From NCBI GenBank assembly GCA_038496445.1, contig JALMLS010000143.1, positions 124,001 to 188,000 on the forward strand: a stretch of 64,000 bases of DNA, given 5' to 3'. The stretch is from Trichosphaerium sp. ATCC 40318. Taxonomy: Eukaryota > Protista > Tubulinea. This document shows, one piece after another, positions 8,190 to 57,614 of this stretch (its first letter is position 1; every line of letters starts with the position of its first letter). A program made the position numbers and the translations under genes. The notes under the pieces were generated by a model. That model had not been told where the DNA came from. It did not search any database and saw only the letters and a program-made list of their open reading frames with translations.

Positions 8190-8715
8190 TTGTTTTTATG
8201 TAAAACGGAGCGTACTTGAACAAACAAGCGTTTGTTGATCTTTGTGTGAATTAAAGTGATCTAGATGATGTAATTCACAACGGGAGGTTGAATATTCTGG
8301 AAATAAAGAATTAAGGCACAAAAAGGAAAGACCACTTTCTTTCCTAAATAGAGCATCTTTACCACGCCTAACAAACGATTTAATAGTACAACGATTGTTT
8401 TCTATGCAATTTCTCCCAATACTCCGTTTCTGGATAACAGAATTGGTATAAATGACGTGGAAACACTAGTAGTATGCAACAAAATGAGACTTTATAGGAT
8501 GGTTGAACTCAAAACCCGAAAACTTTTCTGCAACACAGTTTTCGTGGAAGAAAGAAAAAAACCGTTAAACTCACAACAAGAGGCGCTATAATTTTTTGAC
8601 TTTGGAAGTTTTAGTAGTAAGAGAGTATTGGGTTGTTAATTGAGAAGTATTTAGGCGAACACGATCGTGTAACTCTACGAAAATTGTTAAGAAGAATATC
8701 GTATTTATTTCGATT

Positions 8716-9557
8716 TTAGAAAGCATGAACAGGTCTCTTTGCAAGCCATTCTTTAAGTATTCCTTGCTCAATAGTGCTTCGTAGTTCTTTAAGTTTAGGT
8801 GCTGATTTATCTAAAGCGGCAATGATCTTATCTTGAGCTGTAAAGTAACCACAGAAGGTCACCCAAGCGGCATCAGCGATGCTAGGTTTCTGACGAAAAA
8901 AGTCAATACAAGTTTACTAGCAAGACGTTTAGCGTACATCTCCAATGAAGAATCCTTTGCCATTGGCTTTGTGTATAGCTTCCAAGAAACCGACATGTTT
9001 TGGTAGTGTTTCATCATAGAAAGTTGCTAATGCCTTTGCCTTCTCGTCTTCTCCGACAGTTCTTTTTGCTCCTTGATAAGAAGTCAAAATATCAAGAATA
9101 CCTTCTCCGACAGAGTCAATCAAAGCTCCTTCAATGTCATTTGATCCAAATAGACCAAATCTCTTAGCAAGAAATCTCTCAATCGCATGAGATTGAGCAA
9201 TGACAGTTGCTAAAAGAAAATAATAAGAAAAGAGTACGGCGTAAAGGAAAAAAAAAGTCAAACATACTCTTTCCATTCTCTGTAACGTGAAGAAGTGGTA
9301 CTTGCCCAAACGGTAATGTAGGTTGTATTTTTTCATAACCCTCAGGACCTTCTATTTTAAATCTAACATAAAACTCATAAGAAACCACGTGGTGAAACAT
9401 GTAAAAGCAAGCAAAAAAAAAAACAGAAAAAAAAAATCACTTACTTTTTAAAACCGAATCTCTCATCTGTGTAGGCGACTTTTGCTAGAGCGAAAAGATG
9501 TCTAGAAATCTCTGCACGTCCTCTGATATTAAAGTATTGAAGCTTGTATGTTGTCAT
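8716..9557 (-). CDS. Glutathione S-transferase (sigma-like)
   Basis: MTTYKLQYFNIRGRAEISRHLF...YTDERF; QPTLPFGQVPLL; IAQSHAIERFLAKRFGLFG; SIADAAW; EWLAKRP. Confidence 0.93.
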
Positions 9558-10100
9558 GCTTGTGTGTGTTGAAAATGAATGATAATTTGACACCCAAAAA
9601 AAACATTCCGCTCTTTCTTCCGCATTCTAGAATGGAGAAACAGGCGGACAGTTTTTCAAGAACGACTCAACACAGAGGTTGGCGCGAGCATCCTTAATAC
9701 CACGTCATTGGACGTAACCAATAATATCAAGACTCAGTAATCCCGCGGAATATTGCGTATGCTCTCAGAATTGCCGAGTCATAGTACAGGTGATATTTCA
9801 ACTCACATGGCCATGAATTCATAGTATAGCAGCGCTGAAAAGCGGGTAATAAAACCTCCAAAACGGACAAATTTAGACCCTACAACTAAGAAAAGGAATA
9901 CGCAAAGTACACTTACAAATTGTACGTTGCGGACACTATGGTGCGACTGCTGAAGGGTTAAGGCACTGGCTATTCACATACTCTCTTAAAAGTGGCAACA
10001 CTAGCATTGTTGTAAAGGCTTGGTAGGTGTTCATACAATGTAACACAAACAGAGGCTATTTTGTAAATTCTTTTAATATTGTTTTCTTTTCTTTTTTAAT

Positions 10101-49909: not shown

Positions 49910-52900
49910 TCACTCGAAATATACTGTTGCAACATCTATAAGTTTCTTATGGGCACTAGAAGGCACCCTTGATACAACAACAGTATGTTCCTCATTGGAT
50001 AAACCAAAATGTGTATATACAGTTATCTTTACAGTTACACCTTCTGTGAGTATCTGCTTCGAAGGAGAAAACATGCGGATTAACACACGATAAGATCCGT
50101 TCATTGCATCTCTAACCTATAAAACAGTGTTCATACAAAAGGTCTCTTGTAAAACAGCACGTTTTTTTTGTTCCAAAGCAGTTTCTTGTTAACACGTACC
50201 ATGTATTCAACAGGCCCATAACCTTGAGAAAAATCCCTTGACATCAAACCACCGTTTTTAGTTGTATTACAGAACGAATAGCAAGCAGTGTTATCAGGCT
50301 AAACCTCGTTAAAAACTTTCCACGCATTTGTAAAATCCGTACCTCCAAAACATAGAGTTCCATATCTACTGCGTCTGTATCCCAGGCACATACAACGCGC
50401 AGATCAACATGGAGTTGTTTAGACATCAAAGCGCTTATCTTTGGTATCTTATGTATACGTAGAGCGTCTACTCTTTGTACTATACTACATATATCCATAA
50501 TGCAAACCGTCTCAACTTGACTATATGTCAAACCAGTTAGCGTTACAAGATCTCCATTGGTTTTGTTCTTACTTAAATCTCTCATCCCAAGAGCCTTCAA
50601 CGACATCCATTAAATGCTTCAGAGCGTCGACGTTTAATCCTAATGAATGAAAAGCATGTGCTACATCTCTATGCGACTGAGGCTCTTCAGGACGCATCTT
50701 TAGTATTCTCTTATATATTTCCAGTGCTGAACGATACTCCTTTTGTTCTTCAAGAACATACGCCATCATTCTAGAACAGAGAAAACTGTTAGGGTATCTA
50801 CGACTACTCATAAAACCATACCTGAGATACTTTGGTTCATCAATCGATACCTCTGCCATATTGCTTATAATGTGAAGAGCTTCTTAGGTTTTCCACTTGT
50901 AAACAATTTACATGCTGTTTCAAAGTACAACATTGGGTTCACTTGTTTACCATGTGCTTCATTGCAAATTATTTTATATTTTTTCAACACATCAGTTCCG
51001 ACGTTATTCTATTCGTAGATATCAAACAGAGCACTAAATTCGCTTTTTCTTGATTGTACCTTTTTGCTACCAAGAATGAACTGAGAAGAATACCGAGTTT
51101 GTGGCCTCTCGACCCTAACAATACAATGGCGCTTCGCAATATTGATTTTCTCAGCGGATATGTATGCAAACGTCTAAAGCGTAGTTTTAAGAAAATAATA
51201 AGATACTGGTTATTTTCGTACATTTCTCGAAATGCTTGTTTGATCTTCCTCCGAGAAACTTTGTTGAATCTCGCTCGCTTGTTGATCACCGCCTTCACAT
51301 GCTTGCATAATTGTAGTCCAGTATTCTAAGTTTACTGTCAAGAACAGGATAATTGTGTTGTGTACCTTGAGATGTGTTTAAAGGATTTTCCGTAGTTTGT
51401 TCACTAGTGAACTCCTCTGCAAACAACGGCTGAATTTTCTGGCTGTTTTGAGTTGTGACATGTGTCGTTATTCGAGGATTTGTGCTAGGATAGAATACAG
51501 TTTTACGATATTCAATTTTCTTTAACCATGAGTACAATAGTACAATAGGCACGCATAACAGCATACCAAGATATCCATACATAGCAGCTAACATACTGTT
51601 AGTATACCCCCGCAGAACTCGTAACGAACAGTATAAGCGTTCCTTCACCATAATGACACCACCAGTAGTAGCGCTAAACGCGGTACATATAGCGCTCCAT
51701 GCATAGTCGAAAGGTAAGCTAGAACGAACACTTTGGATTACATGTGGTGCGTGGTTCCTTATCATGTTCCTTATCATCAAGCCAATACTTACAATCGCTG
51801 CTAGCATTACAAACCATTTCCAGGCTTGAGTGCATGTTATGCAGTTGCTTTTTGGTTTAAACTTTTGGTGTTGTGGCTGTGGCTTGATTTCTAGCGGATA
51901 GGCAGCTGCTAGTGCTTTCAAGTCAACAGAATATTCTACACCCAAGCGCTTCAATAAACAACTCTTCCACAAAAGTTAGATAGATATTGCAGAGTGTAGC
52001 TTACTTTTCCTACTGCCGAGTCTCCTATGTACGCGACTAATAATCATATTAACCACCTGAACTGGTGATAAAAAAGTTACCTTTGAATATGAAGGACGAT
52101 TTTTTTGTGTTGTATGCCATCATGTAAGTTTCTTTAGAAATTAGCTGATCAAGACTATCGAGTTTTTATTGTTTTTATTTGTACCTTCATACATGGCTAG
52201 TGCTGCTTCATCTAATCCTTGCATTGTTTTAGCGGATGTCCTAAAATGCAGCATATTGTGTGATTCAGCGTATGCTTGAGCTTCTTCTAAAGAGACTACG
52301 ATATTTTTTTTAAATCAACCTAGGAAAAATATTAATTTAATGCTTACCAAGCGAAAAAATACTCTATGTCTATCATGTTGTACCTTGTTTCCCAGCAATA
52401 TTTTTACTGTATCTCCAGTACATTTTGTTTTTATTTCATTCTCCCACATACTGACATTTTTGAACGATTCTCGATTTGTTAAGTCATAAACAATCAAGAA
52501 CTACAAGCGTCAAGTTAGAAATAGAGTTTATCGTTCTAATACACTTACAGTTGTAACGTTGCGATAGTAAGAAGTTGTTATCGTCCTAAATCTTTCTTGT
52601 CCAGCCTTTAGAAGGAAGTTAGCAAACCTCACGTGCGCAGTGGTTAGAACATAATATTCGTACTGTATCCCACATTTGAAACTTTGCTCTGTTACCGTTA
52701 CCCAGATCACAGCTAGATATTTGAAAATCTACTCCAATAGTGGATATAAAACAATCCGTAAAGCTACTACCACCTGTACGCTTAACAGAAGACTTTGGTC
52801 CTTGAATGAATGAGAAAAAGTAAGAACAAAACGAGAAACTTACTAGCTTGCTTTTTTGGACGTTTTTGCTTTTGTTTCAGTCCTCTTTGAGAACCACTCT

Positions 52901-55900
52901 CTTTCTTTCCACTTAGGCCCACACAAGAAAGGAGGTTTGTTGACGCCTTTGCAATATTCCTAATAGCACCAAAACGACGACGAACTGATGACGCCTGTGA
53001 GAGATGTGTACTACCTCGAGATATGTTGCTGTCTACTTGAGATATATTTTTGCTGATATCATTTATCATTTCTCTTTGGTTTTGAAGACTATCAAGCACG
53101 CTACTTCCCAATTCCTCTGTTTCGATTGCAATTCTTTGAGCATCCTGTAGTAACCTTGAGGAATCAGCTGCTTTATCTTGATGAAACAGAAGAGCTTTCC
53201 TTTTTGCAGATTTGCTGTATCTTGATGACTTTGGCTTTGGTTGTTCTTTTGCTTTTGCTGGTTGTTTCATTTTGGCTGGTTTGATTGGTTTGCTCCTTGT
53301 TGGTTTTGGAAGTCTCTTTATATCGTTTTTGAACACGACCAATTCGTCTTCTTTATCTTTGAGTGCTACTGCTTCTCTTTTGCTGTAATTGATGGTATTT
53401 AAATAAAAGTTCTTCGTTGGTTCCATTTTTTCCTGTGTTGTAGTATCGCTTACAGAGAGTTGATGTGGCTTGATCATTTGTGTTTGTTCGTTATATTGAG
53501 TGCTAGAATTAAACGCGTGATTGTAATCAGATAATTCAGGAGAAGATAGGAAGTCGTCATTTACTTTGAAGTGAAGCATGTGGTCATGTTGCGATCCTTG
53601 AAGACCCCACCTAAACAAACTTATGAGAAAATATTGAACTTAGTCTTCAGCGAGTACCACGTCTTTCTTCGCTCCCATAGTGCCATCACTCGATTCATTT
53701 TTTCATGATGCTTGTTTTCCTTTGATTGTGCTCTGATTGCTGATATTTTAAGAAACTCTCTTCGAATATCTTTCAGCGCAAATGGAGGTTCAATGTCATA
53801 TTTCAAAAACTAGTAAGAATTGTAAGCGACCGGACTTAGTGTTTGTCATGTACCTGATCAAGCGTGTCAAGTACCAGCAAAGAAGTTCCTTCTGTCACCA
53901 AGGTGAACTCTTTGCCTATGTCAATAAGTTGTTCTTCAAGCGTAGAATCAGTTTCAGCGTCCAAGGTCAGCACTTCAATTTTGCGCTGGTTCAATATTAG
54001 TGTATTGTATAAAAATAGCACCGTACTTGTGCCCAAAATCTGGCCACCAGCATGTCTGTATGACTTTTTCCTTGGTTCTTTGATGCTTTTAGAGTAATAT
54101 CTATAGATTTAGTGATGGCTCTTGACGCAAAAAAGCCAAAATGAAGCGTTATAGTAATATTTTTTTCTGGTATGTGATGAAGTTTTCCACTGATATTTAA
54201 TACAGAAGTAACTGGGACAGGTGCGCTAGGAAACACCTATTCTTAAAGTGAGAGATTTTTAAATATGTAGAGATCATACTTCGTGTATGTATTCTTCAGG
54301 GTATGTAATGTCGATTAGCCCAAATGTCGGTTGAGTAATTGCTTGAAAAGCGCTTTGAATGTCTAAAAAGTTCTGGCTACAGTTGAAATTTCCTCCTCCA
54401 CTCTTACGTCCCCATAGCCTAACAAAGGTAAGAATCAATCTAATCCTAAGCGCTTACTTTAACTTCATGTGGTTTGCCATGGACGAGCACGTGAAAAAGT
54501 ACACAGGTACTAAAAATACAGTCAATTGCAACAGTAGTAAAAATTGATTTTAACCTTTAAATTCTGGTAGTTCAGGCGATCCAACTGTATCAAAGCCATC
54601 CGTGAATGCTAAAAAATAGCTGTAATCAGTTTGAGAAGAGCACTTAGAAGGTGCTTTTATGTGACTCAGGTCGCTTCCTACATGTATGTGAGGTGTTGTA
54701 AACTCAGTTCATTATGTACCTCCATCATACCATAACGAAGATAAATATGTACATAACTTCTCAACGTCACACAAAGAGAAAGTCTTGGGCTTTTGGCACG
54801 AAAATGAAAAGCAGAACAAATGGATCAACACATCTTTAGTTCCGTACACACGCAATAATTTGGATAGAATTTGTTTTAGACATTTTATGGAACGTGTGCA
54901 ATCTCGGTGGCTGTAAGACCTGAAAGTGTGTTAAAGTTACCTTATATGCTTGGATATTAGTCAATACGTACGTGTCCCAATAAATACCAATCAAGGATGG
55001 TAGTGTTGATGTTGTCACGCTTGGAATTTGAACAGGTTGCTTAATAGCAAAGTAAGAGCCTAAACGCGTTAATATCGGTAGGATGAATGCCTTAAAGAAA
55101 ACGCTTACCTCTTGCACTGGTTTCACTAAGCACGTTTCCTGTAATTGCTGGTATTTCAATATGAACGTTCTCGTTCAACTTTATGTTTCGTTTACTTGAT
55201 TCAAAAATCCACCCATTTGGTTTGCTGTGCGTTCTGGAATCTTTACTGAGTGCGCCCGTACTCTTCAAGATGGGCTTAGTAGCTCCGTCTCCATCTGCAA
55301 CATGAATCTTGGAAACTTATTAAAAAAGAACTACGGAAGTGAATACCTTTAAACTACACTTTTTTATAGTGGACGCTGCAATGTTAAACAAGCTCTTGTA
55401 GGTATAGCATGAACCAGATACTACCAAATCTTTTGTATAGTGCACTCGAACAGTCCTACTACCCTTTGAAGGTATAGGATAAATCCTTGCTTTGAATATA
55501 TTTCCAGCCTGGAAATCACGTGTCAGCCCACGTGTCAAGCGAAAAAAAAGAGAATAAGCGTAGGAGAAGGCGTACAACTTGTTCAACAATTGCTGGTCCT
55601 TTCGACTGCTTCCTGACCTCTCCTTCGAATGCAATCCTGAGTGGACGTTAGTTTGCTTGGTTTTTCGTCAGATTTTATTTGAAAAAAGGTTTGTAGCTTT
55701 AGAAATACGCAACTAGCGCTCTGATGCGTAATTAAGCGTACCTTGCTTTTACTTTAGGGCATACAACGCCTGGTACCATTTTTCCGTTAATGTCGACAGC
55801 ATAACCGCAAATACTTGCGCCTTGGCGTTTATTTAGATTATAAATGCGATTGATCGTATTTTCCGCACCTTCAGGAAGAGGAAACACTAGTTCGCCTTCA

Positions 55901-56085
55901 ACGTCACCGTCTGTACTCTTATTCGCCCAAACCATTGTAAGAATAGTTTCTAGAGGACTATAAGCTCTTTATCAACTTACATCGTACCAACCTGACAAGA
56001 AACCTCGAATGTTAACATCTATGTCTATAAGCTCTGCAAGTAGCTGTTTTTTTGTTGTTTTATTGACCAATTGCACTGATGACAT
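49910..56085 (-). CDS. Multidomain VIT - vWA - SNARE motif - circularly permuted Rab GTPase - hydrophobic segments - TPR - DUF2135 (YfaP-like) protein; two apparent 1-nt deletions
   Basis: VIT: [42 protein letters not shown]. vWA MIDAS: IYWDTSYS, YDGGSD, FTDG. LVTEGTSLLVLDTLDQFLKYDIEPP. TPR: RPEEPQSHRDVA. DUF2135: DLRVVCAWDTDAVDMELYVLEP..GGLMSRDFSQGYGPVEY. Frame breaks at the T8 tract 52304-52311 and near 50884. Confidence 0.9.
51945..52775 (-). other. Circularly permuted Rab1/Rab8-like GTPase domain, order G2-G3-G4-G5-G1
   Basis: Spliced [72 protein letters not shown]. Confidence 0.92.
52990..53165 (-). other. Qb-type SNARE coiled-coil motif (Vti1 / SNAP-25 N-like)
   Basis: DSSRLLQDAQRIAIETEELGSSVLDSLQNQREMINDISKNISQVDSNISRGSTHL with a zero-layer Q. 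Confidence 0.85.
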
Positions 56086-56226
56086 TATGTACAAAAGTGT
56101 ACTCTAGAACAACTTATTTCTTTGAAAACATTGATCACCAAGTTGGTAAAAAAGACTACGACTGAACCGGTTCACAAAGCTATTGACTACTTACGTGAAA
56201 ACAGCAAAAGCTTTAAAGTAGGCAGA

Positions 56227-57614
56227 ATGTCAAAGCTTGCCGACGCTGTTATATGTTCTATTGATACACTGTACATGATATGTGGTGTTTGTGACAGTTT
56301 TAAAACAATACTGAGTTTATCAAGTACAAATACAACTATTTCACTTACAATACGAAACTACAACACATCTATGCTTCTTTTAAAACAAAGATGGCCAATT
56401 CTTCATTGGGGTCCCAAATGTCGTTGGCCAGTTGACGTATTGACCAGCTCTTCGTGGCAAGATGTGTTTTATTTTGCATCATATATTGAGTATCAAGAAC
56501 ACGTGCGCAGCATTTATCTCTGTTTTTGTTTGTTGATGTTTTCACAGGCACCTCTTACAATTAAGTGGCCGTTCTATACATCATTTTTAGATATTAGGAC
56601 GGGCTTAAAATACTCGGGTAAGGTAGAACTTATACCTTTCTACTGGCGGCTTGAAGCTAAGGTTTTAAGCTACACTGTACATATAAGTAGAATGATGCTA
56701 GTATCAGAAGATGGTAGGAATTTGTGGTCGCATTGGGTTAGCTTCTCTAGCTACAGGAGTCACCTGATCACCAAGGATATCGTTGTCGTTGCAACTACCG
56801 AAAAGATAGCAGGGGTTGACACCAGAACAGGAGAGGTAAAATGGGAAGCAAATATTAGCCTTAAGAAACCTCGAATAGCTTGCACAAAGAACCTTGTGTT
56901 TTACATTGATAATGAAGCTTCAGGTTGGTTATTGTCCAGTCGTTCATTATTTTGCTTGAGTTTATATGAAGGTACACAAACTATAAGAAATGAAGTACGA
57001 CTAACATCACTTCAAAAGGAAAAATTTTATGGAAAAAAAATGTGATTTCACGTGTTCCAAAAGATGGAAGATTAGAAATTCGCGCCAGTGAGAATCTTGT
57101 AGCTATTCAAAGAGTGAGTCCGCTTCAATCAAAAGGTGGTGTACTATCCATAACGGAAAACGCTTCAATCTACGACATAAGTTCATTTAAGTTTATTGGA
57201 GAAGTGTCCCATAGTTGTAATGATTTCGAGTGTTGGAATGATAAAGTTATTATCACATCAGATAAAGATCTTTATTGTTACACACTTACAGGAACCGCAT
57301 TGAGTCTAACGTGGAAAGTGCAAGTTTCTACACGGTTTGCAGATAGCCTTCTATTATTTGGAGATGGAACATTACTCACCTACACTTGCTCTAATAATTG
57401 GACTGACGGTGTTGAGTTGTCTTTGGTTGAGAGCGATGGCACTAAGAAATGGTCATATTGTGTTGATACAGATGGTGATATGAACTCTAGGAGTCTTCGC
57501 AAGATAGATATTGATATTCGTTCTTATCATGGTATATCCGTAGTCGCTAGAGACCAGCATTCCACATGTGTAGAGGTGGTGACTTGGAAAGGTAAACAAC
57601 TTTTTAGCAGTTGA
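56227..57614 (+). CDS. F-box-like + PQQ-type beta-propeller protein
   Basis: Divergent F-box-like N-terminus (ILSLSSTNTTI..LLKQRWP..SWQDVF); propeller blades IAGVDTRTGEVKWE, LSLYEGKILWK, DGTKKWS. An intron at ~56972-57018 joins the two ORFs. Confidence 0.65.

Follow-up and report, generated by a model that had tools for sequence, protein, structure and literature searches.

A probable circularly permuted Rab1-like GTPase domain within the linker of a VIT/TPR/DUF2135 scaffold gene of Trichosphaerium

We analysed a stretch of 64,000 nucleotides from the amoebozoan Trichosphaerium sp. ATCC 40318 (assembly GCA_038496445.1, contig JALMLS010000143.1, positions 124,001 to 188,000, hereafter the window), in which a gene of about 6.2 kb occupies positions 49913..56085 of the minus strand. 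The predicted product comprises a VIT domain, a vWA-like region, a variable linker, tetratricopeptide repeats (TPR) and a DUF2135 (YfaP_C) domain. Within the linker lies a cassette of about 2.7 kb that contains a SNARE motif, a GTPase domain of the Rab1 type and a series of hydrophobic helices. While a canonical Rab is a free protein of about 200 residues with the motif order G1-G2-G3-G4-G5, the domain described here is part of a multi-domain gene and its motifs follow one another in the order G2-G3-G4-G5-G1. A preliminary description of this DNA had called it a circularly permuted Rab domain. The GC content of the window ranges from 0.34 to 0.40; the published assembly has a GC content of 37.69% and a mean intron length of 75 bp (PMC10521059). 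All features given below are on the minus strand unless marked otherwise.

The exons of the permuted segment were re-derived from the minus-strand DNA by splice signals and translation, and the resulting pieces were placed with the Pfam Ras profile (PF00071) and by sequence searches against solved structures. Four upstream exons together cover the profile from position 22 to 156. E1 (52800-52664) encodes the end of the loop between helix 1 and switch I, G2 with the RabF1 motif STIGVDF, and strands 2 and 3 as far as WDT; it spans profile positions 22-55 and aligns with residues 27-64 of Ypt1. E2 (52605-52549) continues with the AGQE of G3 and with RabF3/F4 (profile 55-75). E3 (52500-52384) contributes strand 4, helix 3, strand 5 and the start of G4 (LLGNK), matching the profile at 75-120 with an E-value of 1.1e-9 and residues 85-122 of Ypt1 at about 50% identity. 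E4 (52319-52185) supplies the VD of G4, helix 4, G5 (TSAK) and helix 5 (profile 119-156); it is readable only after a one-base shift, and past the run of A at which the shift occurs it aligns with residues 129-161 of Rab21 and Rab5.

The part of a Rab that normally comes first is encoded behind helix 5. E5 (52131-52081) carries a linker with two consecutive ATG codons followed by the start of strand 1 (SSFIFK). E6 (52036-52005) is 32 nucleotides long, completes strand 1 and extends into the P-loop as far as its GK (VAYIGDSAVGK). E7 (51963-51366; 598 nucleotides) begins with the P-loop serine and helix 1 (SCLLKRL), after which come about 45 residues, then three hydrophobic stretches, and finally an acidic tail. 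The spliced peptide of E5-E7 matches residues 6-29 of Rab1A, Rab1B and Ypt1. As residues 27-64 and 85-122 of Ypt1 come first and residues 6-29 last, strand 1, the P-loop and helix 1 are encoded after helix 5, and the residue coverage of the pieces places the cut between helix 1 and switch I.

The exon joins are further supported by the reading frame. The cassette contains seven introns, all bounded by GT and AG, with lengths of 41-64 nucleotides and, in most cases, a CTAAC-like branch site. E4 ends in phase 1, and E5 and E6 add 51 and 32 nucleotides, respectively; the open frame of the 598-nucleotide E7 is reached only when both are included, while splicing E4 directly to E7 leads to a stop within 13 codons. 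Thus, the very short E6 is required, because E7 falls in frame only with it. Upstream, E0 forms one uninterrupted open exon that lacks a P-loop, and an intron of 43 nucleotides separates it from E1. A contiguous Walker A motif was not found in any frame of the gene, and no second RabF1 motif occurs within the window.

Together, the two Rab parts make up a single G domain and overlap by about three residues. G1 to G5 are complete (GDSAVGKS, the T in STIGVDF, WDTAGQE, GNKVD and TSAK), G4-G5 being readable only across the break in the run of A, and the spliced translation also holds the RabF motifs IGVDF, YYR and IVYDLT. All best matches among the solved structures are Rabs, namely Ypt1, Rab1, Sec4 and Rab8. 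Rab1/Ypt1, and likewise Sec4, Rab8 and Rab35, are closest in strand 1, the P-loop, switch I, switch II and the strand 4-5 region, with about 50% identity, and the permuted domain retains all G motifs and most RabF motifs of these proteins. It differs from them in that the segment corresponding to their first 29 residues stands at the end, that both the hypervariable tail and the cysteine prenylation motif are lacking, and that it is divergent, with the helix 4/G5 part slightly closer to Rab21 and Rab5. Instead of ending in a CC or CXC tail, helix 5 runs directly into strand 1 (...LDEAALAMYE-ETYMMAYNTKKSS-FIFKVAYIGD).

The peptide strings and exon boundaries given in the preliminary description were all recovered in this re-derivation, as were its canonical GT-AG introns, here found to be 41-64 nucleotides each. 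Its further statements, that the motif order is G2-G3-G4-G5-G1, that no P-loop precedes G2, that helix 1 and switch I flank the cut, that the two halves make up one domain, that this domain derives from a Rab and that it has no prenylation cysteines, agree with the exon translations and the Ypt1 and Rab coordinates. The segment is very probably a real part of a gene encoding a Rab1-like circularly permuted G domain, and neither a chance similarity nor the product of a reordering artefact.

On both sides the cassette is flanked by sequence of the scaffold. The VIT exon (55735-55968) matches the Pfam VIT family with 2.2e-7, and E0 (52844..53610) starts with the conserved W-W of the scaffold and proceeds through a basic linker and the SNARE motif before joining E1 in frame. 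Downstream, the frame of E7 continues through canonical introns into E8 (51325-51222), E9 (51173-51060), E10 (51008-50822), E11 and E12 and thereby into the TPR and DUF2135 domains, apart from a one-base break near 50883-50888. The TPR exons (50573..50880) match TPR families of Pfam and are 41% identical to the bacterial relative L004 and 48% to P0122; the exon at 49913..50116 encodes DUF2135/YfaP_C (9.9e-8) and carries the stop codon. The predicted E11-E12 junction (...ERF-NQVETV...) agrees with the corresponding sequence of P0122 (...ARF-NQIEIV...).

When the bacterial family members L004, L006 and L007, each an open reading frame (ORF), were mapped onto the window by tblastn, both flanks were matched; the database fragments used for comparison were P0122 and P0072, both of them short. 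The bacterial matches run from VIT to ...ALWERRKTW/W and resume at YKIICNE.../ALHIISNMAE, from where they extend to the stop codon, with 33-41% identity in the half that holds the TPR (with its RPEEPQS motif) and DUF2135. At the W-W, the amoebal junction ...RRKTW/WGLQG aligns with the bacterial ...AWWEHG. Neither the exon pieces nor the full bacterial L006 and L007 give a Pfam vWA match, and we infer the vWA-like region from the motifs WDT, DGGT and TDG, which align with the bacterial members.

The bacterial members from metagenomes consist of one ORF each, about 1000-1150 residues long, and contain VIT and DUF2135. They thus share with the amoebal gene the scaffold on either side of the cassette (VIT, the vWA-like motifs, W-W, TPR with RPEEPQS, and DUF2135), but carry a signal peptide and have a short or different linker. 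By these alignments the scaffold gene is of bacterial ancestry, residing in an amoebozoan genome. As the N-terminus of the amoebal protein lacks a signal peptide, unlike that of L004, the whole protein is probably cytosolic. The VIT/vWA protein Vwa1 of Dictyostelium is likewise cytoplasmic and has been proposed as a binding hub (PMC10539598); the comparison covers its VIT/vWA part.

These flanks and junctions also bear on whether the locus should be read as one gene in its assembled order. The two ATG codons at 52118-52123 directly precede a typical Rab N-terminus, and retention of the E4-E5 intron would bring a stop 15 codons past the E4 donor, as if a first gene ended past helix 5 and a second one started at the ATG codons and encoded a P-loop stub with membrane helices. 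On this view, a gene starting with 27 Rab residues would have to encode the TPR and DUF2135 half, whereas the bacterial homologues have both flanks in one protein; moreover, donor, branch site and acceptor of the E4-E5 intron are all canonical, and its removal leaves the two exons in frame. We therefore regard two separate genes as very improbable. We give marginally less credence still to an assembly chimera that reordered the exons of an ordinary Rab gene. The published assembly does derive from multiple-displacement-amplified DNA and long reads (PMC10521059), but such a chimera presupposes three breakpoints (two within exons) that all preserve the frame and the splice signals, and the segment is flanked by scaffold sequence and not by the flanks of a Rab gene.

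A single contiguous gene in the assembled order, which we prefer, is interrupted by two frame breaks. The first lies in the run of eight A at 52304..52311 (T8 on the plus strand) that follows GNKVDLKK. The run is one base short and an in-frame TAG follows two codons on; one added A restores the G4-G5 segment, whose length we take to be that found in Rab1. The base missing from this tract had already been pointed out in the preliminary description. Alternative splice sites around the run were considered, and none of them repairs the frame. The heptamer A_AAA_AAA is a classic -1 slippery sequence, and a -1 slip on it would be expected to yield the same protein as a run of nine A. The second break, at 50883..50888, separates ...KLFTSGKPK from ALHIISNMAE in the next frame. 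It is likewise one base short, does not lie in a long homopolymer, and in an alignment made by eye to the bacterial L006 and L007 a single codon spans it. Apart from these two breaks, the frame runs through the whole gene.

A comparable break is present in a neighbouring gene, where a run of eight A at 57033-57040 on the plus strand, one base short, splits the ORFs 56122-57045 and 57042-57614 (305 and 189 codons). The first of these has a weak PQQ_2/BamB-like Pfam match, and no homologues of the pair were found. This pattern suggests either under-called runs of A in the assembly or slippage on A8. A window-wide screen of frame switches at homopolymers was too noisy to give an error rate, the exons being short. 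The published assembly was made with Canu from Nanopore and PacBio reads of multiple-displacement-amplified DNA, with three rounds of Pilon (PMC10521059), and single-base deletions may plausibly have survived this procedure, especially where a family has several copies.

The in-frame TAG behind the A8 run and the position of the second break outside a long homopolymer could also indicate that the locus is a decaying copy, a pseudogene of a multi-copy family with two single-base deletions, in which case the permuted class may still be real. No other stop is present in the exons read (the cassette and the downstream scaffold), however, the splice sites checked are all canonical and all G motifs are intact. 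In addition, both breaks are exactly one base short, like that in the neighbouring A8 run, which fits residual long-read errors. We consider decay of this copy possible yet the less probable account; residual assembly errors are the more likely source of the two breaks, and we lean slightly towards an intact copy of the gene.

The cassette that holds the Rab domain fills exactly the stretch that is short or variable in the bacterial proteins. It opens with a Qb-type SNARE motif (53013..53162), which matches Pfam V-SNARE_C with 1.7e-8 (35 bits at a cut-off of 27.1) and SNARE (PF05739) with 6e-4. This motif and the W-W segment of the scaffold share the single exon E0. The three hydrophobic helices encoded by E7 (about 51828-51760, 51708-51643 and 51597-51526; Kyte-Doolittle values above 1.3-2.1 in a 19-residue window) follow at a distance, with about 50 residues and the entire Rab domain lying between the SNARE motif and the first of them. 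A free Qb SNARE of the Vti1 type is tail-anchored, whereas the amoebal motif has no membrane anchor directly behind it. If the E0-E1 intron (52801-52843) were retained, the frame would enter a short stretch rich in F and L and reach a stop after 19 more codons, superficially resembling a tail anchor behind the SNARE motif; this is probably just a T-rich intron.

Bacterial members of the family differ most from each other in the linker. Flavobacteriaceae members (L004 and P0151-P0270) contain CarboxypepD_reg and TonB Plug domains besides VIT and DUF2135, and in L004 the CarboxypepD_reg and Plug domains are located in the linker between the scaffold halves, which indicates that the linker accepts inserted domains in bacteria too. 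A second intron-rich eukaryotic sequence with the same VIT...TPR...DUF2135 scaffold, parts of it masked, is present in JGI metagenome 3300000156 (L001; contig NODE_c0747833, 3600-10750). It carries a synaptobrevin domain (6.8e-19) with a membrane anchor at 8874-9653, just upstream of the TPR exon. A further stretch of the same contig, at 8390-8614, shows SNARE-like heptads, which Pfam does not confirm.

The preliminary description was right about the Rab derivation, the new order and the new cut, and missed the scaffold, the SNARE and hydrophobic surroundings and the second frame break. Its further proposal, that the new termini beside switch I would couple the nucleotide state to the host protein, is conjectural. 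The surroundings in the linker suggest a displayed module no less than a regulatory switch.

Foreign pieces accumulate in the linker and the SNARE motif is separated from any membrane anchor, so the cassette might be read as a collage of unfolded bait pieces, that is, of linear fragments (SNARE, Rab 27-170, Rab 6-29 and hydrophobic stretches) whose order is incidental. Yet the Rab pieces sum to one domain with about three residues overlapping and nothing missing, the linker after helix 5 is short, as in natural permuted GTPases, and the five nucleotide-binding motifs are kept although the identity to Rab1 is only about 50%. Such a collage appears unlikely to us. The intact motifs at this level of identity rather argue for past selection on nucleotide binding.

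Natural permutation of P-loop GTPases is a known phenomenon, and in the literature searched it is represented by two cases. The YlqF/YawG (YRG) family has the order G4-G5-G1-G2-G3, and cpRAS, the second case, has the order G3-G4-G5-G1-G2 with the cut between strands 2 and 3 (Elias and Novotny 2008, PMC2430557). The discovery of cpRAS overturned an earlier claim that only one permutation of the GTPase fold is possible (PMC2430557). The domain described here resembles cpRAS in several respects: both are permuted eukaryotic Ras-superfamily G domains in which helix 5 leads directly into strand 1, both are without a prenylation tail, and both occur in Amoebozoa. cpRAS also sits in large proteins, for example a Dictyostelium protein of bacterial origin (COG2373/alpha-2-macroglobulin-like), and other cpRAS proteins carry vWA. 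In contrast, G2 follows G1 in cpRAS, whereas here G2 and strand 2 precede G3. The G domain of cpRAS is of the RAS type with TIE in G2, while ours is of the Rab1 type with STIGVDF and RabF motifs. The partners differ as well, since the vWA of cpRAS proteins is of the Sec23/24-trunk type and C-terminal, whereas our domain is located in the linker of a VIT/vWA-like/TPR/DUF2135 scaffold.

With the YlqF/YawG family the domain shares natural permutation of a P-loop GTPase and the succession of helix 5, strand 1 and P-loop. Members of that family fold normally and hydrolyse GTP, as reported in PMC2430557 from papers cited there. They are ancient and universal ribosome-assembly factors outside the Ras superfamily and are not inserted into a scaffold, whereas here G2 and G3 come first and the domain is Rab-derived. 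The domain is a member of neither class, since motif order, cut point, GTPase family and host scaffold set it apart from both (PMC2430557), as the preliminary description had already proposed from the motif orders. The order string G2-G3-G4-G5-G1 was not found in the literature searched, and a search for permuted Rab GTPases led only to cpRAS and the ribosome-assembly GTPases. On sequence grounds, then, the cut point and the host protein are new, while the domain is of a known kind, a naturally permuted member of the Ras superfamily.

How the module arose can be outlined tentatively. A Rab gene may have been duplicated in tandem or fused, such that the start of one copy came to lie behind helix 5 of another, with the tail, the outer halves and the DNA between the genes being lost. 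The ATG-ATG in front of the typical Rab N-terminus in E5 suggests the start of such a fused Rab gene. We looked for relics of a duplication, and neither a degenerate P-loop before E1, nor a degenerate switch I after helix 1, nor a KR.G motif shared by the ends was significant against shuffled sequences (p = 0.77, 0.18 and 0.09, respectively).

With a short linker between helix 5 and strand 1, the permuted chain could adopt the normal fold of a G domain and bind GTP. Since both known permuted classes contain the same helix 5-strand 1 join, a normal fold is plausible (PMC2430557), and by this analogy GTP binding is plausible too. Because the ends of the permuted domain would be adjacent, it could readily be accommodated in a linker. 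The hydrophobic helices downstream may replace the lost prenyl anchor and tether the module to a membrane, so that the Rab domain and the SNARE motif, displayed jointly by the scaffold, would form a membrane-tethered Rab1 mimic. Such a mimic, instead of being a free trafficking switch, might serve as bait or sensor for Rab1-binding or Rab1-modifying proteins.

Overall, we assign a probability of roughly 55% to the reading that an in-frame permuted Rab1-like domain sits in the scaffold linker as a displayed mimic. Several points weigh against it. The exon joins are predictions from genomic DNA, and the length of the A8 run is that given in the assembly. The gene contains two frame breaks, and the second of them is outside a long homopolymer. 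The aromatic residue after helix 1, equivalent to Phe28 of Ras, is Leu or Thr here. In Ras, Phe28 stacks on the guanine base, and thus the nucleotide affinity of the permuted domain may be low. The proposed role as bait or sensor is based on genomic context. Finally, no relative with a permuted Rab was found among 150 and 120 database proteins, 80 metagenomic loci and two further loci.

These proteins and loci come from several searches. A protein search with the TPR exon gave the 150 proteins, which are generic multi-TPR proteins, none of them matching other pieces of the gene, and a profile built from a bacterial ORF and the window exons gave the 120, only from Flavobacteriaceae and without any Rab-like sequence. 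A metagenome scan with a single-exon query found nothing, while a two-row alignment as query returned the 80 loci, nearly all bacterial single ORFs; none of the 80 shows similarity to the Rab domain, to E0 or to E7. For the E7 translation (226 residues), no homologue was found in the range of 124-395 residues, no Pfam family was assigned and an Atlas search gave no match; since the E7 search missed E7 itself, the protein collection apparently does not hold the proteins of this genome. Degenerate DNA patterns for an intron-less G3..G4..G1 arrangement had 0 matches in viral contigs and 0 in prokaryotic genomes, the scaffold profile found nothing in viral contigs, and no PADLOC model fits the bacterial scaffold.

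A more far-reaching reading, which we put forward as doubtful at present, is that the domain, cut between helix 1 and switch I, founds a third natural class of permuted P-loop GTPases, folds, binds GTP and belongs to a large amoebal family in which a scaffold of bacterial origin carries copies of core host proteins in its linker (here a membrane-tethered Rab1 and a SNARE motif) as integrated decoys or baits for effectors of intracellular bacteria or giant viruses. If a third cut point just before switch I is real, the GTPase fold can be rewired more extensively than has been assumed. Nature would also have supplied a blueprint for building a nucleotide switch into another protein, since the two new ends adjoin each other beside the part that moves with GTP. 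If the linkers display copies of proteins targeted by pathogens, decoy-type sensing would exist outside plants and animals, and the decoy reading, if true, would amount to an innate-immunity-like sensing system in Amoebozoa.

Two minor observations concern the scaffold itself. Inside the TPR exon lies an intron (50821-50771) of 51 nucleotides with GT-AG ends and a CCCTAAC branch site, which is in frame and free of stops; a scan for ORFs reads it as 17 extra residues that are missing from the bacterial homologues. One bacterial copy of the scaffold (L002; GCA_003507755.1, DNUT01000294.1) is spread over five adjacent called genes, with VIT, no family, TonB_C (weak), TPR and YfaP_C, respectively, and this five-gene split reflects either a broken copy or mis-called genes.

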